Positions 1 through 38,683 of a DNA stretch of 38,683 nucleotides are shown here, piece after piece; within the stretch, counting starts at the first letter, position 1; each line of letters starts with the position of its first letter. This stretch comes from Octopus bimaculoides (Eukaryota): NCBI RefSeq assembly GCF_001194135.2, contig NC_068986.1:62397178-62435860 (forward strand), in the 5' to 3' direction. The notes below the pieces were generated by a model. It was given only the letters and a program-made list of their open reading frames with translations. It was not told the origin of the DNA and ran no database searches. A program made the position numbers and the translations under genes.

Positions 1-187
1 TATATTTAAAATTAAAATTTAGATAGGAGACTTTAAAATGTAGTATCCAAACCTTGTTTTGGATATGTCCCTAGTAGAGTGCCTTGAGAGCACATTCACC
101 ACTCACAGCTGTCAGGTGTCATCTGCAGTACTGCAATTTCATCCCAGGATCTACATAAGGAATTCCTCGGTGCTTATTTAATATATT

Positions 188-1965
188 TTAAATGATTCAT
201 AGGGAAGACAGAGTACATTTTAAGCTTATTTAGCACATTTGTTTCAGTTTACATCTGCACTGCTCCCTAGTAGGTGAGGAATGATATAATGGAATTGAAT
301 GCACCCTACAGTGCAGGAGAAACCTCATCAGGTTATGTAATATGTTATAATATGTACATTTCGCTACTGTGTGTGGCAGGTTGAAGTTGGTAGGATGTGT
401 GTATTTATAGTAGTTCACATCCTGCCTCATTAATAGATTTGTGAACTTCTTTAAATGCATGCATCCTACCAAATTCATCCTGCCACTCACAGTAGCAAAA
501 TGTACATATTATAACACTGTAGTGTATTATGTAACCTGATGAGGTTTCTTCTGCATGGTAGTGTGTATTCAATTCTTTATATCACTAGCAGTATAGCCCA
601 GCGCTGCTCGAGATTAAGCTAGGATTATTAAGTGATCAAGTGCTTTATTTCAAACCAAAATAAGTAACATGGACATCAGATTTGAGCGAAATCCGTTGAA
701 ATTGGTTTGGCTGAAAATGGTTTGCTGGCAATTTGATTGGGAAATCCCATAAGGAATCAGTTTATCGGTTATTTCCACTCATTGACTGCTTTTTTTAAAG
801 TTGCATTAGAGATCTGCATAGGAAAAGGTTGATCTGAAGGTTTGCATTGGGGATGTGANNNNNNNNNNNNNNNNNNNNNNNNNNNNNNNNNNNNNNNNNN
901 NNNNNNNNNNNNNNNNNNNNNNNNNNNNNNNNNNNNNNNNNNNNNNNNNNNNNNNNNNNNNNNNNNNNNNNNNNNNNNNNNNNNNNNNNNNNNNNNNNNN
1001 NNNNNNNNNNNNNNNNNNNNNNNNNNNNNNNNNNNNNNNNNNNNNNNNNNNNNNNNNNNNNNNNNNNNNNNNNNNNNNNNNNNNNNNNNNNNNNNNNNNN
1101 NNNNNNNNNNNNNNNNNNNNNNNNNNNNNNNNNNNNNNNNNNNNNNNNNNNNNNNNNNNNNNNNNNNNNNNNNNNNNNNNNNNNNNNNNNNNNNNNNNNN
1201 NNNNNNNNNNNNNNNNNNNNNNNNNNNNNNNNNNNNNNNNNNNNNNNNNNNNNNNNNNNNNNNNNNNNNNNNNNNNNNNNNNNNNNNNNNNNNNNNNNNN
1301 NNNNNNNNNNNNNNNNNNNNNNNNNNNNNNNNNNNNNNNNNNNNNNNNNNNNNNNNNNNNNNNNNNNNNNNNNNNNNNNNNNNNNNNNNNNNNNNNNNNN
1401 NNNNNNNNNNNNNNNNNNNNNNNNNNNNNNNNNNNNNNNNNNNNNNNNNNNNNNNNNNNNNNNNNNNNNNNNNNNNNNNNNNNNNNNNNNNNNNNNNNNN
1501 NNNNNNNNNNNNNNNNNNNNNNNNNNNNNNNNNNNNNNNNNNNNNNCAAACACACTATTTCTTTTTTTCTTTCTTACTCTTTCTCTCTGTATGTCTGTCT
1601 CTCTGTCTCTCTCTCTCTCCTTCACGCACGTACGCACAGATTTGACTTCGCCATGTCAACAAACTTCAAAATTGGTAAAAGTTTATCGATTTTTACAGCT
1701 ATACACGGCTGCCTCTGAGAGAAATATTTGACGAAAACGCAGGTAGGGTCATGAACAATGTCCTCCTAAAATTGGAGCGACATGCGTGCTAATTTGTGGA
1801 CGTGCATAAACTACATTCGCGTACACACACACACACACACACATCCTCTCTTTTATAGATATAGATTCCTCACCTACTAGGAAGAAATACAGATGTAAGC
1901 CGAAACTATCGTCATGCTAAATATAAATCTTACAATGCATTCTGTCTTCCCTATCAATCATTTAA
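188..1965. mobile_element. Fold-back MITE-like element interrupted by a nested insertion
   Basis: Left arm ~188-397 is inverted-complementary (~80%) to the right arm 461-584 + 1866-1965. TTAA at both outer ends. Confidence 0.7.
585..1865 (+). mobile_element. Non-autonomous Helitron/HINE (Lep1/DINE-1-like) element containing an assembly gap
   Basis: 5' (A)CTAGCAGTATAGCCCAGCGCTGCTCG, 3' (CA)n..TTTTATAGATATAGA(T), internal (CT)n. Splits the MITE arm at an A|T step with no target-site duplication. Confidence 0.55.
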
Positions 1966-1976
1966 TACATACATAC

Positions 1977-2010
<34 letters not shown>

Positions 2011-2115
2011 TTCTTTTATTTTTTCTTTTCTTTTTCTTGTTTCAGTCATTTGACTGTGGCCATGTATATATATATGCATATGTATATTTGTATGTATATT
2101 CATATGTATATAGCT

Positions 2116-2550
2116 GCGGGAGTGGCTGTGTGGTAAGTAGCTTGCTTACCAACCACATGGTTCTGGGTTCAGTCCTAATGTGTGGCACCTTGGGCAAGTG
2201 TCTTCTACTATAGNNNNNNNNNNGCACCTTGGGCAAGTGTCTTCTACTATAGTCTCAGGCCAACCAAAGCCTTGTGAGTGGATTTGGTAGATGGAAACTG
2301 AAAGAAGCCTGTTGTATATATACATATATATGTATGTGTGTATGTTTGTCTGTGTTTGTCCCCATCACCATCGTTTGACAACCGATATTGGTGTGTTTAT
2401 GTACCCGTAACTTAGCGGTTCGGCAAGAGGGACTGATAGAACAAGTACTAGGTTTACAAAGAATAAGTCTTAGAGTTGATTTGTTTGACTAAAGGCACTG
2501 CTCCAGCATGGCCACAGTCATATGACAGAAATAAAAGAATAAAAGAAAAG
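2116..2550 (+). mobile_element. tRNA-derived SINE (CORE-like block)
   Basis: A-box-like TGGCTGTGTGGT, B-box-like GGTTCAGTCC, caccttgggcaagtgtctt block, A-rich tail. Contains a 10-N gap with duplicated overlap. Confidence 0.8.
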
Positions 2551-2561
2551 AATATATATAG

Positions 2562-2731
2562 GCACAGGAGTGGCTGTGTGGTAAGTAGCTTGTTTACGAA
2601 CCACATGGTTCCAGGTTCAGTCCCATTGTGTGGCACCTTGGGCAAGTGTCTTCTACTATAGCCTCAGGTCAACCAAAGCCTTGTGAGTGGATTTGGTAGA
2701 CGGAAACTGAAAGAAGCCCATCGTGTATATG

Positions 2732-2762
<31 letters not shown>

Positions 2763-2976
2763 ATATGTTTGTGTGTCTGTGTTTGTCCCCCTAACATCGC
2801 TTGACAACCGATGCTGGTGTGTTTAGGTCCCTGTAACTTAGCAGTTCGGCAAAATAGACCGATAGAATAAGTACTAGGATTACAATGAATAAGTCCTGGG
2901 GTCGATCTGCTTGACTAAAGGCGGTGCTCCAGCATGGCCACAGTCAAATGATTGAAACAAGTAAAAGAGTAAAGAG
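2562..2976 (+). mobile_element. tRNA-derived SINE, tandem second copy
   Basis: Same family as 2116-2550, head-to-tail. Confidence 0.8.
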
Positions 2977-3543
2977 TATATATATTTTTTATCTTTTACT
3001 GGGGCACTGCCTTGAATTTTTTACTTACAACTGTGAGTTATTCCTGCACAGTTGTGCCTATATACATCTAGACAGATTGCTTTTAATGGCATACAGGCAT
3101 ACAGAAACAATATAGCAAAGAGGTCAATACCTCTTTGCTATATTGTTTCCCTCATTGATTTTCCTCTCCTCATTATCCTGATGAACTTTAACTTATTCTT
3201 CTGCTTATAACTGACATTAAATATTTTGCTCAAGAACACAACCCGATGTCTTTATAACTAATCAGTTGGAAGGTCAGTGCAAGTGCATCTGAAACTCTAA
3301 CCTTACTGATGGCCATTACATCTACATTAAGTGATTTGAGGTCCTTTAGCTTGTGACCTTGCTTCTAAGTCAACTCTGGGTTACTCATTGGAAACCTGTA
3401 TCCAACAACATTATTGTCCACAGATTATGTATCAAAAATAAGAATAAAAACTAATAAACCAATATCCTCAACTTAACTCATGAGCAGTTAATTAACTGAC
3501 TATATCAGCTATAGAGAAAGTGTGACAAATAAAATATACTTAC

Positions 3544-14885: not shown

Positions 14886-16227
14886 CAAAGTCTTAGTAAG
14901 TAGGAAGGCGAACAAATCACAAATTCCTTCAGGTAGATGGCTCTGCTTGATCTGTAGCAAAGGCGTAGGTAGAAACTCCAGAAGATGTACCCAATGTAAG
15001 TTATGGACACATAAGAGGTGCAGCAATATCAAAGGAAGGTTAGCTGGGAAGATAGTTTTTGTGTATGGCAGATATGCAGAGGTGTGATAAACACTGAAGA
15101 TGTACAGACTACAGATACCATCACATGCTAGGGGGAAAAACTAGAAGTAGTTGATAGTTTCTATTACCTAAATGACCATTTGAGTGTGGCTGATGCCAGT
15201 GCTGCCTGACTAGCACCCACATCAGCGGCAGGGGTGGTTGCTCTGAGAGTGTAACTGCTAGAATAAGAATAGTCCGGGCAAAGTTCAGAGAGCTCCTATC
15301 TTTGCTGGTAACAAATGGCCTCTCGTTCAGAGTAAAAGGTAGACTGTATGATGCCTATGTGCGAACAGCCATGCTACACGGCACTGAAACATGGGCGGTG
15401 ACTGCTGAGGATATGTGTAGGCTTGAAAGAAATGAAGCTAGTATGCTCCACTGGATGTGTAATGTGTGCATACACATTAAACCCTGAGAGAAATGTTGGA
15501 CATAAGAAACATCAGATGTGGTGTGCAAGACAGATGACTGCACTGGTATGGCTATGTGGATGAGGACATCTGTGTGAAAAAGTGTCACACTCTAACAGTG
15601 GAGGGAACCTGTGGAAGAGGTAGACCCAGGAAAACATGGGATGAGGTGGTGAAGCATGACCTTCAAACGCTGGGCCTCATAGAGGCAATGAGAAGTAACT
15701 AAGACCTTTGGAGATATGCTGTGCTTGAGAAGACCCAGCAAGCCAAGTGAGATTGTAGTCATGGCCAATGTCAGTATCACATAGCTGACCTGTTTACAAG
15801 CACCCTTCAGTCGTTGGTCAATATGCTGTGCTTGTAAAGACGTGTTGAATCGAGTAAAATCGTAGTTGTGGCCAATGCCTGTGCTGCCTGACTGGCACCC
15901 ATGCCAATGGCATGTATAAAGCACCATTTGAGTGTGGCTGATGCCAGTGCTGCCTGACTAGCACCCACATCAGCGGCAGGTAAAAAGCACCATTCAACCA
16001 TGGGTGATGCCAATGCCACCTGACCGGCTCCTGTGCCTGTAGCATGTAAAAACACCCACTACACTCTTGGATTGGTTGGCATTAGGAAGGGCATCCAGCT
16101 GTAGAAACCTTGCCAAATTAGACTGGTACCTGGTGCAGTCTCCTGGCTTGGCAATTCTCAGTCAAATCATCCAACCCATGCCAGCATGGAAAGCAGACAT
16201 TAAACGACGACGATGATGATGATGACA
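14886..16227 (+). mobile_element. RTE-clade LINE 3' fragment
   Basis: GLSFRVKGRLYDAYVRTAMLHGTETWAVTAEDMCRLERNE; 3' UTR repeats and (GAT)n tail. Confidence 0.88.
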
Positions 16228-16229
16228 AG

Positions 16230-16230
<1 letters not shown>

Positions 16231-16279
<49 letters not shown>
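16231..16279. repeat. (CA)n microsatellite
   Basis: Direct reading; similar tracts at ~1980, ~2740, ~20003 and ~29340-29460. Confidence 0.95.
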
Positions 16280-16282
<3 letters not shown>

Positions 16283-17134
16283 TGTATCTACATATATGTA
16301 CCCATATATACATTCATGTAGGTATATTTTATTGATACCTAGGAATATGTATATATTTATATATATGTGTACACATATGTGTGTCTGCATAGACATACAT
16401 ACATATATGTATGCATACATATTGCTATATTAATACATTGCTTATATCTCAAAATAGATGCATGTACCTGTGCAAAAATACATAATTTTCATGCAAACAT
16501 CTGGATGTATAGGTAACATATTTAATTATGTGTATGCATGATTTACATTCAATTACATATAAAAACCACACTAGAAACAAATTAAAAAGTCCTAATAAAT
16601 ATTTATAGTAACATATATTTTTCCCAAAATACCTACTTTTATTTTTTTCAAGAGATGGCTTCTAACACCATCACCAAATTTAACTTCTGTCTGATCTAGT
16701 CTATGTGACCAACTATATTATCTGCAAGCATTCTTTTGTGAACTCTAAAATGTCGCAAAAACCAACCTTATATACAAAAAATGCAGTGACTTAAAGCCAA
16801 CACTTCTATTTATACCCTTACTTCCACACCTGACCAAACCCTAGACAAAAAAATTTTGCTCATCAAACCAAAATAAATCTAGCTATATCTTTTTTATCAA
16901 CCAACATTCTGCAAACATTGTACTCTATTCCCTCCCTTCCTACACAAATACTTCTATCTACCAATACCACATCTAATTACTATTCACATAGCTTCACCAC
17001 CCAACTCCCAAAAAGAAAACCTTCGCCAAAGACTATTTAAAACCAAAAGGAACATAAGTAAATTAGACTCTGATGAAGGTGAGTGAGCAGGTCAAAACTT
17101 CAAAGTCACTGTCAATCTTTTCCTTGCAAAAGCA

Positions 17135-17290
17135 TGGCTGCATGGTTAAGAAGCTCACTTTACAACTATGTGGTTTCAGATTCAGTTCACTGTATGACAC
17201 TTTGGACAAGTGTCTTCTACAATAACCCTGGGCTAACCAGTGCCTTGTGGGTGAATTTGGTAACAAAAACTGTGTAAGCCCATCATATAT
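17135..17290 (+). mobile_element. Partial tRNA-derived SINE
   Basis: catggctgcatggttaagaagc..ggacaagtgtcttctac..gtgggtgaatttggta matches the head of the 2562 family. Confidence 0.65.
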
Positions 17291-18471
17291 CATCATTATC
17301 ATCATTATTGTTTAATGCTCATTTTCCATGCTGGCTTGGGTTGCATGGTTTGACAAGAGCTGCAAGCTTAAGGACTGCACCAAGCTCTATTGTCTTCTTT
17401 TGCATGGTTTATACATTATACAACTGGATACCTTTTCTAATGCCAACCACTTTACAGAGTGTACTGGGTGCTTTTTATATGGCACCAGCATGTGCAGGGT
17501 CACCAAGTAATTTTCAAGACAAAGACCCCTTGACTGGGAGGAGAAGTAGTATTGAGAGAGGTGGCTGTGTGGCAGCTGATGAGAGGTTAAAAGAATAATA
17601 GAGGGATAGAGAGAGGAGTTTTGTTGTAGAAGAGAAACAAGAATACCACAGTTGTAAAAGAAAAGAGAGACTTAAGAAGATAGATAGATAGATAGTTAGA
17701 TAGGGAGAAAGAGAAAGAGAGAGAGATGGTAGTGGAGATATGTCAGGATATTCGAGGGACAGTTGGGGGTGAATACAAGTGAACTGATACTGAGGGATGG
17801 GCTGGGTGAGTGGGCAGTTGGAATTGAGAAGATAATTTCATAAAAATGTGAGAAGAGATGGGATAGAGATGACTGTAGTAAGTGATGGCTTGGAGGGATG
17901 GTGATGATGGTAAATATGTAAGGGCACAAGGAATGACAGCAGGTAACAAAGGTGTTAAGGATTGAACATAGCAGAGGGGAGAACAGTGGCTGAAAGCACA
18001 GAAAAGTGTCGACTGGTGGAAGACAATCATAAATGGAGGTGGTTCTGGGGTGAGGAAGAGGGAAGGTAACCAAAGAGAGAAGATGTTATGTGCCTCTTCT
18101 GTTTTTGGGGGATTATGGTAGCTGAATAATACCACAAAGAGAGAAGTGATCAACGTTAGGGGATAGGATGTGAAAGGGATGCTTGATGGAACAGAGAGAA
18201 TGGAGGTGGAGTATAACCCTGCATGTACAAGCATTTACCAAGGTGGTTTTGGGATATCAATTTGGCTGTAGTAGGCAGTACAACATAGTGCCAGACATCT
18301 CAATTCTTCATCCACTCCACTGTAAGTACAATATCTTGAGATCAGCCTTCAATACTTTGTTCCATGTCTTCCTGGCTCTCCCCACTTTAAGTGATTGACA
18401 CTTCTTTATGCAACTATCTTTGTCCATATGAATTACATGACCAAACCATTAACCTTCCTGTGATTCCAGTA

Positions 18472-18472
<1 letters not shown>

Positions 18473-18548
<76 letters not shown>
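18473..18548. repeat. (TA)n microsatellite
   Basis: Direct reading. Confidence 0.95.
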
Positions 18549-18551
<3 letters not shown>

Positions 18552-18680
18552 TGTTACTGAATGAACCAGACTATTGGATGTTGTTATACATGCTAGTTAC
18601 AATGCGCTTTCTCGTATTGTAGCTTTTGAATGATGCCACCCCACTGGCTCGGTGAGCAGGCCAACATTCCCCCTGAACAT

Positions 18681-18863
18681 AATGGCAGTCTATTATAGGA
18701 TTACTTATTTATAGCTGAGCAGACATACAAACAAACCCACATACACACGTGTGTTTATGTGTATGTATATAATATATACATACACATAAACACACGTGTG
18801 TATGTGGGTTTGTTTGTATGTCTGCTCAGCTATAAATAAGTAATCCTATAATAGACTGCCATT
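18681..18863. repeat. Perfect 183-bp palindrome ending at an N-gap
   Basis: 91-bp arms exactly complementary around position 18772. Confidence 0.9.
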
Positions 18864-19629
18864 NNNNNNNNNNNNNNNNNNNNNNNNNNNNNNNNNNNNN
18901 NNNNNNNNNNNNNNNNNNNNNNNNNNNNNNNNNNNNNNNNNNNNNNNNNNNNNNNNNNNNNNNNNNNNNNNNNNNNNNNNNNNNNNNNNNNNNNNNNNNN
19001 NNNNNNNNNNNNNNNNNNNNNNNNNNNNNNNNNNNNNNNNNNNNNNNNNNNNNNNNNNNNNNNNNNNNNNNNNNNNNNNNNNNNNNNNNNNNNNNNNNNN
19101 NNNNNNNTATATATATATATATATATTACCTGAAATGTATACATACATTATGTATATACAAATGTATATATATACATTACCTGAAATGTACAATATTATA
19201 TATCCATTATGGCCAATCTCACCTGCTGGTTTTGTGCTAGGGATTTAACAGAGTGTTAGGTAACAATTTGATTATGTAACCCTATGCCAATATGGAAGTT
19301 GCCAATATGGAATGAAATATGGTGACTGCTCTCTATTGTTTGAAACTGATTAAGATCAGCTGTAATGGATATATATACAATACTGTACACTTCGGATAGT
19401 ATACCCACTCTATTGACAGATATAAAAATGCATTTTTTCCTGACTTATGGACTCTTAGATAACTTACACAGACACATGTATATATCATTTCATTTCATTT
19501 CAAAGTTTCAGCTCAGAGCTGCGGCCATNNNNNNNNNNNNNNNNNNNNNNNNNNNNNNNNNNNNNNNNNNNNNNNNNNNNNNNNNNNNNNNNNNNNNNNN
19601 NNNNNNNNNNNNNNNNNNNNNNNNNNNNG

Positions 19630-19750
19630 AGGAAGGAGATGAAAAGGCAGAGCTGTTCGCGGGAGAGGGAGGTGGCTCTTATACAGTCATCTATGTAACG
19701 ACCGTATAGTTCCGGGTCGGACCGGAGAATTGGGAGAATACTTGGGCCTA
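19630..19750 (-). mobile_element. Penelope-type reverse transcriptase fragment with YIDD motif
   Basis: Peptide PELYGRYIDDCIRATSLSREQLCLFISF next to an N-gap; GC-richer than its flanks. Confidence 0.7.
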
Positions 19751-19975
19751 CACACACACTTGTGTGTGTGTTTGTTTGCTTGCGTTCCCATTATTTGACA
19801 AGTGGTGTTGATTAATTTATGTCCCTGTGACTTAGCAGTTTAACAAAAGAGACTAATAGAATTAGTATCAAGCTTCAAAAATAAGTACTGGGATTTTTTT
19901 TCAACAAAACCCTTCAAGACAGTGCACCAGCATAGTTGCAGTTCAGCGACTGAAACAAGTAAAAGATAAAAGATA
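19745..19975 (+). mobile_element. 3' half of tRNA-derived SINE
   Basis: ttatgtccctgtgacttagcagtt..gcaccagcatagttgcagttc..gaaacaagtaaaaga. Confidence 0.65.
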
Positions 19976-20000
19976 CACACTCACATGCGCACGTGCGCGT

Positions 20001-20036
<36 letters not shown>

Positions 20037-20166
20037 ATAAATATAATTATACTCAAACTCTCTACACCCTTGCTCTTTCACACACACTTACATAGGACAT
20101 GAACACATGCAAATATATTCTAGGAATTATGAAATTGCATTTTGTTGGATTGGGATATATGATTTA

Positions 20167-20264
20167 TTATGGAAGTTCTGCTGCAATATCCAACATGTCA
20201 AATATATCAAATAATTCTCTTTGGTCTTTATTCTTGAGTTTATCTACTTGCTTTATAGAGTTTT
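20167..20264 (-). CDS. Candidate alternative terminal exon of host gene
   Basis: Strong acceptor ttattttcttcaaaattttcAG. Phase-1 frame (E)NSIKQVDKLKNKDQRELFDIFDMLDIAAELP followed by TAA TAA, with AATAAA overlapping the stops. No family recognised. Confidence 0.3.
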
Positions 20265-20636
20265 CTGAAAATTTTGAAGAAAATAAAGACACTAGCCTTA
20301 CAAAATAACCCAATCCATGCTAGTTGGAATGTGGGAGATGGTCAGGAAACAAATTTTCTTCCATGACAGTGATACTGCTGATGGTAATGATGATAATGAC
20401 GATGATCATGATGATTATGAATATATTGATGATGAATAGGGAGATGGTAACTATGATGATAATGACAAATGATTTTTTTTTCATAAGGAGTAATGGAAAA
20501 ATTGTTTTTTTCCTTACATTTTCTCCTTATAAAACATCTAACTATATTGAAATTCTTAAATCTTGGCTACTTAGAGAATTGTAGCGAAGCAAATAACAAA
20601 TGCATAAATAAAAAAATTAAAAACAAGAAGTTTTAC

Positions 20637-20750
20637 TGATACACATATTCAGCTTTTGATATCCAGCATTGCATATACAAATGTAACTACCATCAGTATT
20701 TCTACAGCTATGTTGGCATCCCCCATTAGCAGTTGAACATTCATTGATGT
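20637..20750 (-). pseudogene. In-frame cbEGF exon with non-canonical acceptor (probable skipped or pseudo-exon of host gene)
   Basis: 114 nt open frame (D)[37 protein letters not shown]. The acceptor position reads ttttacttcGC instead of AG, and the donor A|GTAAAA is weak. Not in the supplied ORF track. Confidence 0.8.
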
Positions 20751-21739
20751 GCGAAGTAAAACACAATAGAATTTACAGTAAAAAAATTCTATTTTTGCAA
20801 TATATATGCAGAAATTATTATTAATATTACAAGAGAAAATATGATAAATACATGTTTATATCATTACTTCCTAAGTAAGTCTCGCCATTGTGGTTGTTTG
20901 GAACTAAGTACAATTGGATGCTTAGCCAGAATGGATCATCAGGGAATACTTTATTGAATTATGTTACATACATATGTACATATCTACATACATGCATTCA
21001 TGTATATATATCTACATATGTATGTGTAAATTATCATCACCTTTTTTCACTTTATTTTTCCCCATGCACATTGTGCCCAGATTGGCTAATTCAGGAAAAA
21101 AATCATATCTTGAGTTAAAATAATCACCTGATAGTGGTTGAGGGCTCATTTGAACCACAATTTTAAGGGCTATCAGCTAGAATGAAAATTATTTGTTTTT
21201 CCTTTGTTTATGGGGATCTGGGTTCAAATAACCAAATCAAGGCATATCGACCAAAATTACCCTTTTGGTGTATTGCGGTTAAAAATGATTATCTGGCAGG
21301 GGCTTTTAAAGGCTCCTCATTTACTCATTTTTTTTTTTCTCTTTTGAGGGTTTGATTTGACTTACACTTTCATCACCCTGCAATGATTTTCTACTCTCTG
21401 AAAATTAATCTTCAGAAGCCAAAATTGCAATTCTGCACTTTGTTTTGTCCATTTTGTCCAATAGCCCAACTTCTCAGTTTCACTTTCTATGTAAAGTTTG
21501 CCATTTTGCTGACACAGTATTTTTTCCTCACTTGTTTGGTGCTTCACCTTCCTATTGGTCATTCTCTCAAAGCTGTTATCAATTGCTGTTGTGCCTTGTT
21601 GTGTGCTTGCATTTTGTTTGCTTGTTTTGGGAGTATGTGTGCATCAACAGCGATACTGAATCATTACAACATGTTTGGGCCAATTGCCATGGGTTGTTGC
21701 AGTTTCATCTGTTTGGGTTGTTCTTATGACTTGTTTTCT

Positions 21740-22124
21740 TTTATTTTTTATTCTTTTACTTGTTCCAGTCATTTGACTGTGGCCATGCTGGAGCACTGCC
21801 TTTAGTCAAGCAAATTGACCCAAGGACTTATTCTTTGTAAGCATAGTACTTATTCTATCAGTCTCTTTTGCTGAATCGCTAAGTTATGGGGATGTAAACA
21901 CACCAGCATTGGTTGTCAAGCGAAGTTGGGGGACAATCATAGACACACACACACATATACGATGGGCTTTTTTCAGTTTCCATCAACCAAATCTACTCAC
22001 AAGGCTTTGGTCGGCCTGAGGCCATAATAGAAGACACTTGCCCAAGGTGTCACACAGTGGGACTGAACCCGAAACTATGTGGCTGGTAAGCAAGCTACTT
22101 ACTACACAGCTACTCCTGCATATG
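21740..22124 (-). mobile_element. tRNA-derived SINE nested in the Transib element
   Basis: Full copy of the 2562 family on the minus strand. Candidate TSD tgttttct at 21732-39 and 22125-32. Confidence 0.85.
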
Positions 22125-22193
22125 TGTTTTCTCTAATTTGAGCTCAGGGTGACAAAGCCAATTTTATGCTGATGTATTTTCTTTATCTTTTAG

Positions 22194-24346
22194 GTAGAAA
22201 ATCAATTCAAAATGAAGTGGAATAACAAAGAATCATTGAAACTATTTCTTTGTTATACCAAGCATTTGCCTAAAAACATCAAGAAGGGCAACAAATGTAA
22301 TGAAGTAGCGACCATGTTCATAGAGAATCTTCCAAAGCCACCTCCAGACCATTGGTGTATCAGTATGAAATTCTTGAGAATGTTGGATTCAAAACCTTGC
22401 AATAGGAGTTCTCAAGATGATGTGTCCAAATGGAAATATTTGGTTTTCTTTGAGCATGTTCAAGCATCAGATGAAACAAAGAAACCAAGAGGTAGACAAA
22501 GTGTAACCCTCGGTGATGTACCTTGTTTGAGAAAACAATGTTGATTTTGAAAGATGTGCTTTGTTGGGTAGAACAATTTGCTGAGGAACAGAATGTAACA
22601 AAAGAAGTTGCTCTGCAGATGGTAGTTGAATGCAATCAGACTTGGCATTCCTCTGTTAAGCCAACGAAATGCACAATTCCTGTTGACAATGCAGTAGCAT
22701 TAGTATATAATGATAATTTTTCACTGCATCAATATGAAATGATTAGAACATTGTGTCTCCCGCATGGTGTAGTATTCCTGACTAGAAACAAAGTAGATTG
22801 CGTAAAAAAGAAGTTTCATACTACTATTTCCAGTTATCAATTGAAATCGTCAGTGGACACAACTAAGTTAATCAATGAAACAGTTGCAACATTGATCAAA
22901 TTGAGTGAAACTAAACCAAATCATGAAGAAGGCAGTTACCACTTAGTAGGAGAGTTTGATGTCGATGGATCAGAATCTCATAAAATTCACCAGCAGTTGA
23001 TCAACACTTCTCTTGCAACAGAAGAAACTGCACATCTCATTCCAACAAAGAGTAATTCTTTTGTGTTGTCTAGTTACTGTCCTCTTCAGTTGCACTACAA
23101 TGATAGTGTTCTTTGGACAAACCCAGTGCCAAACAGCACCAGTTTTGCATGTCCTGTGTCACTTAACAGGTGTGTTGAGGAATGAGATGTTCTTGCTGTT
23201 GAACTTGAACCATCTTTTGAAGTGATAAGGGGTGAGTATCAGTCAAATGTTCTTGATGACAAAATTATCACTGTCCATTGCAAAACAGAGTGCTCCAGGG
23301 TTGATGGAAAAACGGTCTCCCACCTTCAAGGTGATAGTGGAGCATTCTGTTATCTGTGTCATACATCATGAGCTGATGCAAACAATGTTGGAGTGATATC
23401 TGAAGGTTTTGATATTACCAAGGACTATGCTTCTTGCAAAACAGCATGGGAAAAGCTGTCAGCTGGGGACATTGCCTATTTGAGTAGTGAGAGACAAGAA
23501 CAATGTTATGAGAACGTCATCAAAGCTGATCTTTTTTGTTTTTCAGTTCTTCACTTTAAGCTGCAATCATTGGATTTTACACAGAAAATTTTCTACCACC
23601 CCGTTGGCAGTCAGAAGATCGGGAGTGAGACAGCAAATCTTAATGTGATGCGATTTGTGGGTCGAGTCAAAAAGAATGCATTGATGCTATCCATTCCAGT
23701 ACAGGAATGTTAATGGACATACCAAGTTGTTCAGGGGGAAACATCAATACTGGTCCCCTGGCTGATCAGTTCTTCAGTCTGGTTCACCATGATACAATTT
23801 GTTCATTGATTCTCAATGAGGAAGATTGACAAAACTACTGGATCTTTTTGTCATTCATGAACACCATGCTCACTGTTATGCAATCAGTTAATGCAGCAAA
23901 GAAAGTGCGAGTTGATGTGTTGAAGTCACTGGGCATAGAGCTGATGATGCACATGAAGAACATGTTCCTTAATGAGAAGGGGGCAGCCTTGGGTGATGAT
24001 CATTCCATCTTTCCACTCAATGTGTGCATACAGCTGGCAGCTCTTTGTGTTAAATGGTAGCCAATCAATTGCTAAATGGAATGCGAGTCCAGTGGGGAGT
24101 TGGAATAAACATGTAAGGTCATTTCTAAGTGGTCCTTCTGCAAGATCTTGCCAGCTTTCAATCGAGGATAACATCCATGACATTTTCAGAAGAATGTCCA
24201 TCATGTTGCATCCAGCAATTGCTTTGAAATGTCCCAGCCTAAGTTGTTCTGTTTGTGGTGTAGTTGGTCACACAGCTCGTTCTTCAAAACATAAGGTGTT
24301 TGCTTTGACAGAAGAACAATCAGTAATCAAATCACTATATTACTGA
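22194..24346 (+). pseudogene. Transib/RAG1-like DDE transposase pseudogene (~717 codons reconstructed)
   Basis: Joins ORFs 22212-22544, 22523-23185, 23393-23713, 23848-24060 and 23972-24346 via frameshifts near 22535, 23670 and 23985 and in-frame TGA at 23183, 23369 and 23827. Motifs: RGRQ..VEQFAEEQ (NBD-like), VALVYNDNFSLHQYEMIR, EFDVDGS (D 22964), WTNPVPNSTSFACPV, VDGK (D 23303), GAFCYLC, SVLH, GGNINTGPLADQFF, PWVMIIPSFHSMCAY, WNASPVGSWNKHVR (expected catalytic E is GGG at 24095) and CSVCGVVGH (24245-24271). A phase-0 acceptor tttctttatcttttAG precedes 22194. Confidence 0.88.
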
Positions 24347-24407
24347 CTGGTCCATGTTACACATATTTATCGTTTGGCATTGTTGTTCCAATATTTGTTG
24401 TGAATAA

Positions 24408-24620
24408 GGTGGTTAGCTGGCAGAAGTGTGAGCATGCTGGGCAAAATGCTCAGTGGTATTTTGTCTGTCTTTATGTTCTGAGTTCAAATTCCCCTGAGGT
24501 TGACTTTGCTTTTCATTCTTTCAGGATCAATAAATTAAGTACCAATTGCATACTGGGGTTGATCTAATTAACTGGTCCCCTCCCCAAAAATTTCAGGCCT
24601 TGTGCCTATAGTAGAAAAGA
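24408..24620 (+). mobile_element. Second SINE family nested in the Transib element
   Basis: tctgagttcaaattc..gactttgcttttcattc..aagtacca body. 17-bp TSD atatttgttgtgaataa at 24391-24407 and 24621-24637. Relatives at ~9680-9840, ~30200-30310 and ~33470-34010. Confidence 0.85.
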
Positions 24621-25714
24621 ATATTTGTTGTGAATAATAAGTGATCAGTTTTCACAATTTAGTGTAAATGATTCTGATTTTCTTTGTGAATCATGGTGGT
24701 AGGATAGGGCAGGGTGTTTCATGGCTTTTTCCTTGGGGCGGGGGTAGACTACAATAAAGTTTCAATCAAGGATTTGTTGGGAATATTTTCTTTTTGTTAT
24801 TTCGTATTTTAGCCCTTCTTCAATTTCGGCGTAAGCAAGGCGATATCCTCCAAACTGGAACCTGACCTTCCTAATCAGATTTTTACCCCATAAAATTGGC
24901 TAAATACCAAAAAAAAGTGCGTTTATGATCAATTATTTCAAGAAATTTATCAGGTTTTGAGTTCATTTTATGTTTCTTGTTTTTATACTTGTTTAGTCAT
25001 GTTGGGAGTCAATAACTACTGATTTTACCCAATTTTTGTTGGTTTTGATGTTTGACACCCAAATTGGAATTATACTTTCTGTGTAGCTTTTTAACCCCTT
25101 TGAACTGATTTTTTTCCCACAGTTTACATAAAATGTTGAGGATGTCAAATATGTTAGCCCTTAATATGTCAAAATTTGTCCTTTTTTAAAGATGATCAAG
25201 TTTGAAGGGGTTTTACCAAAAATTTGAATATTTCTATTAAAAACTCAAATTCTTCATGCATCCCCTATTTTCTCAAATTTATGTTGGCCTATGCACTCTA
25301 GACTGTAACTTGAGTGAAAGACAATAAAAAATGCTTCTAAATAAGTTCAAACAGAGGTTAAAAATCTTTTTTTTTTTGTGAAAGGGAATATGCTTAATCT
25401 TATGATACTCCAAAAAAACGTAAATTTTGTTAAATTGGCTGACTTTAAAGAGTTATAAAAATTTAACCATACATTATTTTAAACTCAGGTTTTTTGCTTT
25501 GTGATCTCTTGAGTTTAGAGAATCAGAAAATATGCATTTTAAACATCTGGGAGAAGTTTCCAAAAATGATAGATTCCCACTCTGGGTACAATGTGCCATG
25601 CTTGCATTGGTTGGACAGTTTTCTTCAGCTCAGTGTATCACCACTTGTATCACCACTTGTATCACATCTTTCACTAATTCTTCCTCTTCATTTTATTTGG
25701 CTTGCTTTGCACTT

Positions 25715-26837: not shown

Positions 26838-28230
26838 ATCATCATCATCATTTAACGTTCATTGACCATGCTGGCATGGGTTGGATGGTTTGACTGGGCT
26901 GGCATGCTGGAAGGCTGCACCAGATTCCAGTTTGATGTGGCATGGTTTTCTATGGCTGGATGCCTTTCCTAATGCCAACCACTCTGAGAGGTAATGGGTG
27001 CTTTTACATGCCACCGGCATGGGTGCCATTTGCATGACACCAGGGTGCATTTACATGCCACCATCACGGGTGCTAATTTGTGTGACACTGGTATCTGCCA
27101 CGACTGCAATTTTGTTCGACTTGATGGATCTTCTTCTCAAGCACAACATAATGCCAAAGCTCTTGGTCATTGCCTCTGTGAGGCTCGACACTCAAAAGGA
27201 ACTTAGCCCCTGTGCTTCCATGAAGCTCAATGCTCAAGGAACTCAGCTACCGTGCCTCCGTGAGGCCCAACGTTCAAAAGATGTTCTTTACGTACCACCA
27301 GCATGGGTGCACTTGGCTTGATGGGTCCTCTCAAGCACAGCACATTGCCAAAGGTCTCAGTCACCAATCATTGCTTCTGTGAGGTTCAAAGTTCAAAGAT
27401 TATGCTTCACCACAACGTCCCATGTTTTCCTAGGTCTACCTCGTTGTGAACTACATATTGTCCTATTACGTGAGGGATCCACAGTTAGACAGCAGCACTT
27501 TTTTTACACAGCGGTCCTTGTCCATATGCATCACATGACCATACCAACACAGTCGTCTCTCCTGCACACCACATCTGATGCCTCTTATGCTTAACTTTTC
27601 TCTCAAGGTGCTTACACTCTGTTGAACATGCACACTGACATTGCACACCCAGTGAAGTGTGCTGGCTTCATTTCTTTCAAGCCTACGTATGTCCTTGGCA
27701 GTCATAACCCTTGTTTCACTGCCATGCAGCATAGCTGTTCGTACACAGGCATCAAACAATCTACCTTTTGCTCTGAGAGAGAGGCCCTTTGTTGCTAGCT
27801 GGCATAGGAGCTCTCTGAGCTTTGCCCAGCCTAATCTTATTCTCACAGTTACACTCTCAGAGCATCCACCTCCACTACTAACTTGGTCACCTAGATAATG
27901 GAAGCTAGCTACTGACTCTAGTTTGCCCCCACTGGCAGTTGATGGAGTCTATTTTCTGCACATTTTCAGCGTTTATTGTACCTGTACACCTTCCAAATAC
28001 AAAAGTTAGTTTCCCTGTTAACCTTCCTCTGATGTTGCTATACCTTTTATGTATCCAAAGCTTACACTGGGTGCATCTTATGGTGTTTCTACCTACACCT
28101 TTTCTACAGAATGAGCAAAGCCATCTACACGAAGGGATTTGTTATTTGTCTGCCTTCTTACTTACTAAGACTTTGGTTTTTGCTAGGTTAACTCGAAGGC
28201 CCTTTGATTCTAGACCTTGCTTCCACACCA
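26838..28230 (-). mobile_element. RTE-clade LINE 3' fragment
   Basis: ORF 27466-27846 RIRLGWAKLRELL..GLSLRAKGRLFDACVRTAMLHGSET..RRLCWYGHVMHMD; upstream Cys-rich SICRKGVGRN..C.QCKLW block. Confidence 0.9.
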
Positions 28231-35647: not shown

Positions 35648-37110
35648 ATTAACTGCTAGCATGGGTTGGACGATTTGACTGAGGACTGGTGAACTGGAAG
35701 GCTGCACCAGGTTCCGATCTGATCTGACGGAGTTTCTACAGCTGGATGCCCTTCCTAACGCCAACCACTCCGAGAGTTTAGTGGGTGCTTTTACGTGCCA
35801 CCAGGACAAGGGCCAGTCAGGTGGTACTGGCAACAGCCACACTCAAAATGGTATTTTTTACGTGCCACCTGCACAAGAGCCAGTCAGGTGGTACTGGCAA
35901 CAGCCACACTCAAAATGGTATTTTTTACGTGCCACCTGCACAAGAGCCAGTCCAGCGGCACTGGCAACGACCTCGCTTGAATGTTTTTTTCACGTGTCAC
36001 CGGCACAAGTGCCAGTAAGGCGACGCTGGTAATGATCCCACTCAAATGGTGCTATTTACGTGCCACTGGTATGGAAGCTAGACAGCTGCTCTGGCAATGA
36101 TCATGCTCAGACGGTACTGTTAGTGCTCCAATGGCACAGGTGCCAGTCATCGAATTTGGTTCAATTACGATTTCAATTTCACTTGCCCCAACAGGTCTTC
36201 GCAAGCAGAGTTTAGTGTCCAATGAAGAAGAGGTTGGCATGGGTGCCAATCTACAAATTTAGTTCGATTTCGATTTCACTTGCCTCAACAAGTCTTCGCA
36301 AGCAGAGTTTAGTGTCCAATGAAGGAAAGGTACGAATAAGTGGGCTGGCTACATCCCTAGCAGAGGCCTTGCATTATGGTCTCAGTTGGCTTGCCGGGTA
36401 TTCTCACGCACTGCATATTTCCAAAGGTCTCGGTCACTAGTCATTGCCATGGTGAGGCCTAATATTCAAAGGTTGTGCTTCACCACCTCATACCAGGTCT
36501 TCCTGGGTCTACCTCTTCCACAGGTTCCCTCAACTGCTAGGGTGTGGCACTTTTTCACACAGCTATCCTCATCCATTCTCGCCACATGACCATACCAGTG
36601 CAATCATCTCTCTTGCACACCACAACTGATGCTTCTTAGGTCCAACTTTTCTCTCAAGGTACTTATACTCTGTAGAGTATGCACACTGACATTACACATC
36701 CATTGGAGCATACGCATGTCCTCAGCAGACACGGCCTATGTTTCACTGCCATGTAGCATGGCTGTTTGTACACATGCGTCATACAGTCTGCCTTTTACTC
36801 TGAGCGAGAAGCCCTTTGTCACCAGCAGAAGTAAGAGCACTCTGAACTTTGCCCAGGCTATTCTTATTCTAGCAGCTACACTTTCAGCGCACCCTCCCCA
36901 GCTACTAACTTGGTCACCTAGACAACGGAAGCTATCAACTACTTCTAGTGTTTCTCTCTGGAATGTGGCAATAGTTGTTTTCTCCACATTTTCAGTGTTT
37001 ATTGTTCCTGAGCATCTGCTACATACAAAACCTATCTTCCTAGTTAGCCTTCCTCTGATATTGCTGCCCCTCTTATGTGTCCATAGCTTACACTGGGTAC
37101 ATCTTATGGA
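35648..37110 (-). mobile_element. RTE-clade LINE 3' fragment with tandemly repeated 3' UTR
   Basis: ORF 36736-36987 LEVVDSFRCLGDQVSSWGGCAESVAARIRIAWAKFR..GSET; identical 67-bp tandem copies at 35812-35945. Confidence 0.9.
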
Positions 37111-37347: not shown

Positions 37348-38683
37348 ATATACGTTTATATATTCGCTTTGCAAGATTCTTAGTGTGAAATCATGTGTTG
37401 AAACAGATATTGTTGTATTTGGGGATGGTCATGTTGCCAGTTTAGACAATAAAAACACACGCACTATATATTTGGTGTTAATTTGCTTCAGCTTTATTTT
37501 ATTTTTTACATTAATTATATTTCGGCCAGAGTTCTTTCGTTACACTTCTGTGACCTCATCAGTGGTTCTTTGCTTTCTTCTTTCTTATTTGTGTGTCTTT
37601 CCTTACTAACAATCAGCCATTTTGTATTTTGTATTCCAATTGTATTTGTCTTTATTTGCGCATGCATATACCCCTATGTGTGTCTATGGGAGTGCCCATA
37701 TTATCTGTATCCCCTGTTTATACACATTCGTTTAATTTGTTTTTATTTATTTGATCATGTGTTTATACCTACTTATTATTTTTTTTTCTATTGTTTCTTT
37801 TTTTGTATTTAATTTAATTTAATTTTGTTAACGTATATAGTTATTTAATTCCATTTGTTGATCTGTATATTGTTTTATATTTTGTTTATATTGTTATCAG
37901 TTTATGGGGATCTTATTCTGTCATATGTTGTGGTGTGTTAGGGGTGTGTGCTAGTGTTCCATTCCAGTTTCCTATTCAGACTAGGTGTATCTTCTATTAT
38001 GTGTGTAGCTTCTGTAATTTGTCTAAGTGTTACATCTGCTCTATGTGTGGACAAGATTTTAACTTCTATGTTGTTGAGTGAGCACCAGTGTTCCTGCTCG
38101 GCATGCTGGTACAGAACCGATGAGCTCTTCTCTTCCTTTATACGTAACGATAGGAATGGGATTTGCCCACTCTATAGGAGCAAGTCATGGAACACCATTG
38201 AAAGGACTAAGAAAAAAATAGGGAAGGCCAGCTCATGGTATGATAGCCACAAATACCAGAGTGTCATGTTCGTCGACACCACACCTAGAGGTGAACTGGC
38301 ATACTGCTTTAGAAGGGCCCTAGCCAAACTTAAGCTAAGAATTGAGGTTGTTGAAAAGCCAGGCAACCCTATCAAATCCCTAATCGGTAGAACCTACCCT
38401 TTTAGTAGAACCCCTTGCACTGATAGGAACTGTACTGCATATAGATTTAGCTCACAAACAAACTGTAAAGCCAGAAATGTAGTCTATAGTATAAGATGTA
38501 CAGAGGGATGATGCAGTACAAGACAACGACGTACGTAGGGGAAAGGGGACGGAACATAGGAGAACGGGTAAATGAACATTGGAAGGTACTTAAGGAAGAG
38601 AAGAGCTCATTGGTTCTGTACCAGCATGCCGAGCAGGAACACGGGTGCTCACTCAACATAGAAGTTAAAATCAGATAATACAG
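37348..38683 (+). mobile_element. Penelope-like retroelement (same family), inverted 3' segment followed by forward linker/GIY-YIG region; runs off window
   Basis: Peptides VMFVDTTPRGELA..VVEKPGNPIKSL..PC..CKARNVVYSIRC and YVGERGRNIGERVNEHW..LYQHAEQEH. 37348-38138 is the 3' end of the family on the minus strand, and 38058-38138 is inverted relative to 38591-38672. Confidence 0.85.

Follow-up and report, generated by a model that had tools for sequence, protein, structure and literature searches.

The window analysed here is a stretch of 38,683 nucleotides from Octopus bimaculoides (contig NC_068986.1, positions 62,397,178 to 62,435,860 of the forward strand). It contains a Transib element of 4,529 bp (21067-25595), bounded by 19-bp terminal inverted repeats (TIRs) and flanked by CCATG, a target-site duplication (TSD) of 5 bp. 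Inside the element lie the remains of a transposase gene.

A sequence-only reading of the window had described this gene as possibly a RAG2-less relative close to the RAG1L proteins, carrying a segment that resembles the RAG1 nonamer-binding domain (NBD) and a C-terminal knuckle tail. All of the strings that it quoted were found in the window. The features of the element are collected in Table 1.

Table 1. Features of the Transib element and its transposase pseudogene (positions in the window)
Feature	Position	Strand	Evidence
Target-site duplication, left copy CCATG	21062..21066	.	identical CCATG abutting both termini
5' TIR block 1: heptamer CACATTG and adjoining TGCCCAGA(TTGG)	21067..21085	+	repeat and end-motif searches
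5' subterminal A/T-rich block 2, AGGAAAAAAATCATATCTTGA	21093..21113	+	start: position 27, counted from the element's end
Transposase pseudogene piece 1: N-terminal helical domain and GRQ (ancestrally GRP) motif, 22491-22499	22212..22535	+	tblastn with P0001; alignment; AlphaFold2 residues 1-82, pLDDT ~95
Pseudogene piece 2: NBD-like helices and start of DDBD, VALVYNDNFSLHQYEMIR (22694-22747)	22526..23706	+	tblastn; alignment
Piece 2, catalytic Asp residues	22964-22966, 23303-23305	+	alignment
Piece 2, in-frame stops	23183-23185, 23369-23371	+	translation
Piece 2, ZnC2 CxxC	23348-23359	+	alignment
Piece 2, zinc-domain insert	23405-23554	+	alignment
Pseudogene piece 3: region of the GGNxNTGPLA motif; in-frame stop 23827-23829	23665..23997	+	tblastn
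Pseudogene piece 4	23957..24346	+	tblastn; alignment
Piece 4, ZnH2: His; second His replaced by Tyr	24014-24016; 24029-24031	+	alignment
Piece 4, catalytic Glu replaced by Gly	24095-24097	+	alignment
Piece 4, knuckle-like tail CSVCGVVGHTARSSKH	24245-24292	+	alignment
Piece 4, terminal EEQSVIKSLYY; stop	24311-24343; 24344-24346	+	translation
3' subterminal block 2, TGGGAATCTATCATTTTTGGA (minus-strand letters)	25559..25579	-	begins at position 17 from the end
3' TIR block 1, CACATTGTACCCAGAGTGG (minus-strand letters)	25577..25595	-	repeat and end-motif searches
Target-site duplication, right copy CCATG	25596..25600	.	same CCATG outside the other terminus

A broken gene between intact ends

The transposase gene is interrupted by three frameshifts and three in-frame stops. 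When an intact relative (P0001) is compared with the window by tblastn, it matches as four pieces in three frames. Since neighbouring pieces touch or overlap one another, introns are rejected as the cause of the frame changes. Further lesions are the change of the catalytic Glu to Gly, of a ZnH2 His to Tyr, and of the GRP motif to GRQ. The window copy is an inactive fossil.

The TIRs of the element are intact. The left TIR, CACATTGTGCCCAGATTGG (21067-21085), is identical to the reverse complement of the right one (25577-25595) at 17 of 19 positions. As the sequence-only reading had observed, identity stops 12 bp beyond the heptamer. Both TIRs begin with an RSS-heptamer-like motif, CAC(A/T)(G/T)TG, as do those of two complete related elements, L001 (3,956 bp, bounded by TIRs and TSD) and L007. 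The window element has the heptamer CACATTG at its two ends, and the two relatives have CACAGTG; these relatives carry 5-bp TSDs of their own (TAATG and CATTT, respectively) and share with the window element its terminal 15-bp block, CACAGTGTGCCCAGA. The heptamer alone is not enriched across the window; the full 15-bp end motif, with at most one mismatch, occurs in the window solely at the two termini. Three relatives (P0003, P0006 and P0009) yielded no further TIRs, their contigs ending before the element does.

A candidate second, A/T-rich block is subterminal at each end. In L001 and L007 the best match between the 5' and 3' ends past block 1 is found at offsets of +10 (33 of 2000 shuffles) and +9 (52 of 2000), both nominally significant. 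In the window copy it falls at +10 and is not significant (1118 of 2000 shuffles). An offset of 9-10 bp for this block appears in all three complete elements, in DNA that is rich in A and T. The 3' block 2 of the window element is also conserved with the 3' ends of L007 and a further relative, L003.

Between the TIRs of the window element and of L001 there is no other long open reading frame (ORF), in a search for long ORFs that could not reach a decayed short gene in the window. That the element carried a single gene, without a RAG2-like partner, is supported. This part of the sequence-only reading holds.

Domains of the transposase and its intact relatives

Intact relatives can be found in marine metagenome assemblies. 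They are about 710 amino acids long, show 44-57% identity, and come from contigs of ENA metagenome and other assemblies, TARA included. Searches gave 17 close homologues and, with a cut-off of E≤1e-3, 3,067 relatives counted as representatives; P0001-P0010 are apparently intact members of the clade. Their transposase core consists of the DDBD, pre-RNase H, RNase H with the D-D-E triad, ZnC2/ZnH2 and CTD. All seven residues of the triad and of the C2H2 zinc site are kept in the intact relatives, and the catalytic Glu is present in every one of them.

Pfam scans of the stitched protein, the intact homologues and the N-terminal residues 1-155 gave no family above threshold, RING/ZDD and zf-RAG1 included; the only matches below threshold are to RAG1 (PF12940) and zf-CCHC. 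In a PDB search with a single sequence, HzTransib was the sole match. FcoRAG1L, part of AanRAG1L, Mle6236 and the DNA of Mle3931 were taken for comparison from the supplements of Tao 2022, all with OCR noise. Sequence strings of the present family have no match in those supplements.

The structure predicted by AlphaFold2 is that of a monomer. It was built from 87 sequences and has a pLDDT of 93.9 and a pTM of 0.80. The top Foldseek match is HzTransib (6pqx_A), with a target-normalised TM of 0.84 and an E of 4e-23. RAG1 chains give TM values of 0.62-0.78, and BbRAGL 0.75.

The proposed NBD-like segment is present in the window, as KPRGRQSVTLG (22482-22514) followed by ..LRK/(T)MLILKDVLCWVEQFAEEQ (22527-22591). 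It is stitched, however, across a -1 frameshift near 22535, with KPRGRQ..CLRK in one frame and MLILKD.. in another, and its motif reads GRQ where intact relatives have GRP. GRP is kept in nearly all full-length relatives, including P0109, a protein of the HzTransib clade. Taken alone, the NBD stretch aligns over 35 columns with an hhalign probability of 57% (P 1e-4), and scores -0.6 bits by HMMER. It also opens a collinear profile alignment that begins at GRP and reaches the knuckle with a probability of 99% and an E of 3e-18. A RAG1-type NBD has its GRPR/K motif ahead of helices that dimerise in an intertwined manner and bind A/T-rich DNA; in the structure predicted here, GRP is disordered and is followed by helices at residues 107-128 and 132-147. 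Foldseek alignments gain about 60-70 columns when the RAG1 chain contains the NBD.

The zinc domain contains an insert of about 35-50 amino acids between the CxxC and the LH motif on the ZnH2 side. This insert aligns with RAG1 and RAG1L, where it is equivalent to α11-α12 of RAG1, and is absent from HzTransib and P0109. The pre-RNase-H loop that is specific to RAG1L is present in the mouse (Mmu), Bbe and Fco proteins, and was not found in the family by alignment.

The tail, CSVCGVVGHTARSS(KH) in the window, has the pattern Cx2Cx3GH at the position seen in RAG1L, directly after the CTD. The sequence-only reading had pointed out that its final Cys is Ser, and had proposed comparison with a consensus of the genomic copies. 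The Ser is real in the window; in these alignments, though, it is a trait of the clade and not decay. Every clade member is missing the fourth Cys and has S, A, F, I, N or K in its place, so that the change is no lesion that a consensus would mend. In intact relatives a conserved His lies two to three residues past the missing Cys. Within the knuckle of this clade, the role of fourth zinc ligand has probably passed from Cys(+5) to His(+7/+8). After the knuckle comes a short conserved terminal helix in the intact relatives, and the architecture of the tail agrees with that of the published MleTransib_3931.

Placement among Transibs and RAG1L proteins

The profile of the family scores 190 bits against Mle6236, a ctenophore Transib of 'Subgroup I', and 120 bits against HzTransib, as compared with 24-27 bits against mouse RAG1, BbeRAG1L and the coral protein FcoRAG1L. 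With phmmer, Mle6236 again exceeds HzTransib (129 and 67 bits). Against the PDB, the profile matches HzTransib with an E of 1.7e-31 and RAG1 with an E of 1e-5; with the former and the Foldseek match, the identity of the core is certain. In a neighbour-joining tree, RAG1 and RAG1L group together at a bootstrap value of 100%, with the family outside this clade and within Transib diversity. The distances are saturated, and what is read from this tree is the support for the RAG clade, not its deep nodes, including the apparent pairing with the HzTransib clade. Subgroup I is sampled through a single OCR-noisy Mnemiopsis protein.

Judged by its sequence, the family is one more case of a kind of Transib that is already known, with ancestral features, and no close cousin of RAG1. 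It is not close to RAG1L because of the low scores to RAG1 and RAG1L, the fully supported RAG clade that leaves it out, the missing pre-RNase-H loop, and HzTransib as its best structural match. The suggested close kinship with RAG1L therefore falls. Transibs commonly have this tail: canonical Cx2Cx3GHx4C forms occur in 27 of 165 Transib representatives, spread over the tree, and the family lies amid them. The remark that the transposase is not of the minimal insect type fares better. A difference from the minimal HzTransib type is supported by about 157 extra N-terminal residues, which include the GRP/NBD-like segment, by the zinc-domain insert and by the knuckle. The ends differ as well, being bipartite with a second block that appears offset by 9-10 bp.

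The nearest description in the literature is that of Subgroup I (Tao et al. 2022; PMC9435367), with MleTransib_3931 and MleTransib_6236 of Mnemiopsis and Transib-9_HM of Hydra. These elements share with the family a single gene, a 5-bp TSD, the α11-α12 segment, a GRP-containing NBD-like part, a knuckle tail of the CTT1 (CTT*) type with a terminal EE..A.I.S.YY/FF motif behind it, and, apparently, two conserved end blocks at unequal spacing. The family differs in its knuckle, which is a variant without the fourth Cys and with His at +7/+8, and in its end motif, CACAGTG/CACATTG plus TGCCCAGA.

HzTransib of Helicoverpa zea (PDB 6pqn and 6pqx, among others) is the best match among solved structures in both sequence (20% identity) and fold, with the same D-D-E and zinc ligands and the same class of TSD. 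Its solved chain of 497 amino acids aligns from residue 158 of the family onwards, offers nothing that corresponds to the N-terminal domain or to the GRP/NBD-like segment, and ends before the knuckle.

BbeRAG1L of ProtoRAG and other invertebrate RAG1L proteins such as FcoRAG1L have in common with the family the RAG1 fold, a Cx2Cx3GH knuckle directly behind the CTD, a conserved TR2-like block beside the heptamer in the TIR, and the zinc-domain segment. RAG1L proteins also have a RAG2L partner, RING/ZDD, the C1-C3 N-terminal motifs and the pre-RNase-H loop, none of which the family has. RAG1L-B lacks GRP, and the fourth Cys is canonical in RAG1L; the family is the reverse on both counts.

Vertebrate RAG1 shares GGRPR/GRP, helices ending in ..EFA.., and then the DDBD (A..L....N..LS..QY..M.R). 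Its residues D600/D708/E962 and C727/C730/H937/H942 all align with those of the family, at an overall identity of 13-16%. The NBD of RAG1 is longer, with three helices as against two short ones in the predicted family structure; its tail is acidic and not a knuckle; and RAG1 needs RAG2, for which the element has no gene.

Mechanism, alternatives and significance

The region is very probably the gene of a Transib DNA transposon that was once autonomous and is now dead, with a single gene, no RAG2-like partner, and a RAG1/Transib core joined to ancestral accessory parts that have no counterpart in HzTransib (cf. PMC9435367, PMC10462144, PMC7204232). By analogy with HzTransib, BbeRAGL and RAG, the element would have moved by cut-and-paste transposition, with nick-hairpin cleavage at the CAC end, and would have duplicated 5 bp of its target at insertion. 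The knuckle tail may clamp the 8 bp that adjoin the heptamer (TGCCCAGA), like CTT* on TR2. The GRP/NBD-like segment may read the second A/T-rich block, which appears to lie deeper in the element at its 5' end than at its 3' end, by about one helical turn.

The accessory parts could instead resemble their RAG1 counterparts by chance or convergence, as an AT-hook-like basic stretch and a retroviral-type zinc knuckle without any NBD or CTT* role. The marginal scores of the NBD stretch on its own would fit this, as would a tail that lacks the fourth Cys and matches generic zf-CCHC models below threshold. Still, both segments lie where RAG1 and RAG1L would lead one to expect them, in one collinear alignment. 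GRP persists in nearly all full-length relatives, even in P0109; FcoRAG1L and 27+24 of the 165 Transib representatives have a knuckle at the same position; and conservation in the ends extends to the 8 bp that adjoin the heptamer and, apparently, to the second block. Chance or convergence is therefore unlikely.

The collinear order of GRP, the α11-α12-like segment and the Cx2Cx3GH tail could also mark the element as a RAGL-type relic, that is, a RAG1L relative that lost its RAG2L partner. This is less probable still. The scores, the bootstrap support and the absence of the loop, RING/ZDD and zf-RAG1 given above all speak against it, and neither L001 nor the window copy has room or an ORF for RAG2L. 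The features common to the family and RAG1L have, moreover, been reported as ancestral Transib traits (PMC9435367). As for a domesticated transposase serving as a host gene, nothing but the long pieces of reading frame speaks for it; given the intact TIRs and TSD, the frameshifts and stops (three of each) and the loss of catalytic residues, such a gene is scarcely credible.

All of the features that set the family apart from minimal HzTransib are known from published Transibs. CTT-CCGHC, NBD-GRPR/K and asymmetric TIRs have already been reported in Transibs (Tao 2022, PMC9435367; Martin 2023, PMC10462144). In the published view, insect-type Transibs have lost three parts that are ancestral to both RAGL and Transib: the NBD-like, the α11-α12-like and the CTT*-like. 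The family fits this view as a further Transib lineage that keeps all three parts together with bipartite, apparently unequally spaced ends.

The window copy itself, being a fossil, is of small import. A more speculative proposal concerns its clade, which is RAG2-less, includes apparently intact members, and combines the GRP/NBD-like segment and the putative His-liganded knuckle with a conserved 8-bp block and an offset second A/T block. Such a clade might, tentatively, stand in for the pre-RAG2 ancestor, with a 'RAGL0-like' dual mode of end recognition; the rewired knuckle seems not to have been described before. If this is true, the clade would be a natural and experimentally tractable proxy for that hypothesised ancestor. 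Its intact marine members could serve as a RAG2-independent model for how the work of end recognition is divided between the tail clamp and the NBD-like segment.

A dead Transib-type element and its relatives

A search for inverted repeats finds CACATTGTGCCCAGATTGG and its reverse complement, matching at 17/19 positions, with CCATG flanking both. A 15-bp end motif, sought with 0-1 mismatch, occurs in the window only at these two termini. From this, the unit is a Transib-type element 4,529 bp long, and its target duplication measures 5 bp. The plain heptamer shows no enrichment in the window, and tblastn finds a single copy of the element there.

Three-frame translation, and tblastn with P0001, the closest intact homologue, resolve the transposase into four collinear pieces in three frames. 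Neighbouring pieces overlap or lie directly end to end, so the changes of frame come from frameshifts; introns as their source are ruled out. Both catalytic Asp and two Cys are kept. The catalytic Glu has become Gly, the second His Tyr, and the GRP motif GRQ. Judged by its sequence, the copy is dead. The motif strings quoted in a sequence-only reading all occur where it placed them, but its "NBD-like" string joins two frames across the first frameshift.

Features of the element (window positions)
Feature	Position	Strand	Method
CCATG flanks	21062-21066, 25596-25600		
5' inverted repeat	21067-21085		inverted-repeat search
3' inverted repeat (reverse complement)	25577-25595		inverted-repeat search
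Transposase piece 1	22212-22535	+	tblastn
Transposase piece 2	22526-23683	+	tblastn
Transposase piece 3	23665-23988	+	tblastn
Transposase piece 4	23957-24343	+	tblastn
In-frame stops	23183-23185, 23369-23371, 23827-23829	+	
Catalytic Asp	22964-22966, 23303-23305		
Catalytic Glu, now Gly	24095-24097		
Second His, now Tyr	24029-24031		
GRP, now GRQ	22491-22499		

The stitched protein matches 17 database proteins, all from ENA or Logan assemblies, of which 8 are full-length (702-723 aa, 44-57% identity). At E≤1e-3 an exhaustive profile search returns 3,067 representative relatives; 291 of these pass E≤1e-30. In an alignment mapped onto mouse RAG1, the equivalents of D600, D708, E962, C727, C730, H937 and H942 are kept in every intact relative.

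Complete elements were found on two contigs encoding relatives, L001 (2018-5973, TSD TAATG) and L007 (8518-13524, TSD CATTT). Both terminate in CACAGTGTGCCCAGA, and the 3' end on a third contig, L003, carries CACATTG, as in the window. The L007 contig, 812 kb long, is eukaryotic and rich in repeats, and its Transib is surrounded by a Ty3/gypsy-type element, a Ty1/copia-type retroelement and a hAT/ZBED gene (1-3455, 15519-19475 and 19729-21434).

The earlier statement that terminal identity ends ~12 bp beyond the heptamer holds for the window, but a second A/T-rich block was overlooked. This recurs past the 15-bp block, as GTGAGAAAAAAT in L001 (12/12 match) and as TGGGAATnnAT in the other elements. 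On the 3' side it starts at position 16-19 and on the 5' side at 26-28. The window and L001 share a best 5'/3' offset of +10, and L007 has +9; the observed score is reached by 1118/2000, 33/2000 and 52/2000 shuffles for the window, L001 and L007, respectively. Recurrence at unequal spacing indicates that the family's ends are probably bipartite, with spacing differing by one helical turn. Such ends would resemble the "asymmetric TIRs" of Subgroup I Transibs and the 4/13-bp arrangement described for AanRAGL (PMC9435367).

A non-coding stretch ~60-100 bp inside the 5' end (21123-21170, ..TGGTTGAGGGCTCATTTGAA..) is conserved with positions 1-55 of L006, a contig encoding a homologue with 56% identity. 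It may act as a subterminal binding site or promoter.

Transib or RAG1L

The sequence-only reading proposed a RAG2-less relative close to RAG1L rather than a minimal insect-type Transib. Its first part holds, since no second long reading frame lies inside the TIRs flanking the window gene and no RAG2L-sized ORF was found in L001. Closeness to RAG1L is refuted on the reading's own terms, by a family lying inside Transib diversity with CCGHC tails scattered there.

A single-sequence search of the PDB matches only HzTransib (Helicoverpa zea), with no RAG1 or RAG1L. The family profile gives HzTransib 112 bits (E 1.7e-31) and mouse and zebrafish RAG1 ~27 bits; BbRAG1L is absent among the matches listed. 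On transcribed reference sequences, in part from the Tao 2022 supplement, the family HMM scores 190 bits on the Mnemiopsis Transib Mle6236 and 120 on HzTransib, and 27, 27 and 24 bits on mouse RAG1, BbeRAG1L and FcoRAG1L. By comparison, FcoRAG1L reaches 451 bits against BbeRAG1L and 244 against RAG1. A confident AlphaFold2 model of P0001 (87-sequence alignment, pLDDT 93.9, pTM 0.80) was searched with Foldseek, with TM normalised to the target. HzTransib 6pqx_A ranks top (E 4e-23, TM 0.84, 20% identity); RAG1 reaches TM 0.62-0.78 at 13-16% identity, and BbRAGL 6b40_A 0.75.

In a neighbour-joining tree (588 trimmed columns, 100 bootstraps), which is crude and has saturated distances, RAG1/RAG1L split off at 100% support. 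The window protein groups with P0001 and another relative, P0003, within Transib diversity, across which canonical CCGHC tails are dispersed. Tree and sequence scores agree on the deciding question, the separation of Transib from RAG1/RAG1L.

Accessory parts

That this is not a minimal insect-type Transib is borne out by an N-terminal part and a zinc-domain segment beyond HzTransib. HzTransib is alignable only from family residue 158. In the model, residues 1-82 form a confidently folded helical domain, followed by a disordered GRP stretch and helices 107-128 and 132-147. The conserved ~80-aa domain (window 22212-22460; P0001 1-82) comprises four helices and a short strand (pLDDT ~95), has no Pfam match and lacks a counterpart in HzTransib and the RAG1 core.

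Against an alignment of RAG1, BbeRAG1L and FcoRAG1L, profile-profile comparison gives a single collinear match that begins at GRP (residue 89) and ends at the Cx2Cx3GH knuckle (residue 688), at 99% probability and E 3e-18. The NBD piece by itself reaches 57% (P 1e-4, 35 columns), and Foldseek alignments are ~60-70 columns longer on RAG1 chains containing the NBD. Calling the segment after GRP NBD-like, as was done earlier, is therefore reasonable but not proven. GRP is not peculiar to the window clade, because P0109, a full-length HzTransib relative, has it. In the otherwise intact L001, an interruption of the frame, a possible intron or damage, falls exactly in this segment (3035-3133, ..KETRGRRSSEFI* then MDLISNECK..).

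Family members carry a ~35-50 aa segment between ZnC2 and the ZnH2 side; it aligns with RAG1 ITRSHAENLQRYEVW... and is lacking in HzTransib and P0109. Its counterpart in Tao 2022 is the α11-α12 region (PMC9435367). The pre-RNase-H loop specific to RAG1L is absent from the family. P0109, which belongs to the HzTransib clade, combines GGRP with a ..SLFLE-type helix at its terminus but has neither knuckle nor zinc-domain insert, a pattern which suggests stepwise loss of accessory parts.

Invertebrate RAG1L carries Cx2Cx3GHx4C as CTT*, which clamps TIR sequence adjoining the heptamer (PMC7204232). This canonical form occurs in 27/165 gathered proteins; another 24 lack the Cys at +5, ~20 of them from the window clade. 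The Ser in place of the final Cys was rightly seen, but it is a clade-wide trait and not a lesion, since every clade member lacks that Cys and reads C-x2-C-x3-G-H-[TS]-[AS]-R-S-x-x-H. Those lacking the Cys in this clade have His at +7 in 16 proteins or at +8 in 6, and the likeliest reading of the alignment is that the fourth ligand moved to this nearby His. The sister group retains the canonical tail (P0022, for instance, has GHTVRSC). Downstream of the knuckle the terminus is also conserved, with the motif EE..(I/V).S(L/F)(Y/F)(Y/F). An identical tail arrangement, CKKCSGRGHIGRYC...VIQEEDALVSSFFK, occurs in MleTransib_3931, a published Subgroup I element.

Subgroup I Transibs are reported to possess CTT1 (= CTT*), the α11-α12 region and asymmetric TIRs, and both subgroups a GRP-bearing NBD equivalent (Tao et al. 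2022, PMC9435367). Published work on Transibs (Tao 2022; Martin 2023) therefore already documents the combination flagged earlier. What the window holds is one fossil copy from a Transib lineage whose accessory parts are ancestral; the knuckle without a fourth Cys and the particular end motif are minor, clade-specific twists.

Elsewhere in the window

An assembly gap (a run of N, ~700 bases) occupies ~860-1560. A 187-aa ORF at 37948-38511 (+), without a Pfam match, ends in ..CTDRNCTAYRFSSQTNCKARNVVYSIRCTEG, which we take to resemble the Cys motif and the beginning of the GIY-YIG endonuclease domain in Penelope-like elements. Three tandem arrays (35789-36066, 15867-16024, 26996-27088), built of 47-67-bp units, have common GCCACC(A/T)GCAC-type cores; by their appearance they belong to a single family of short interspersed or satellite repeats.
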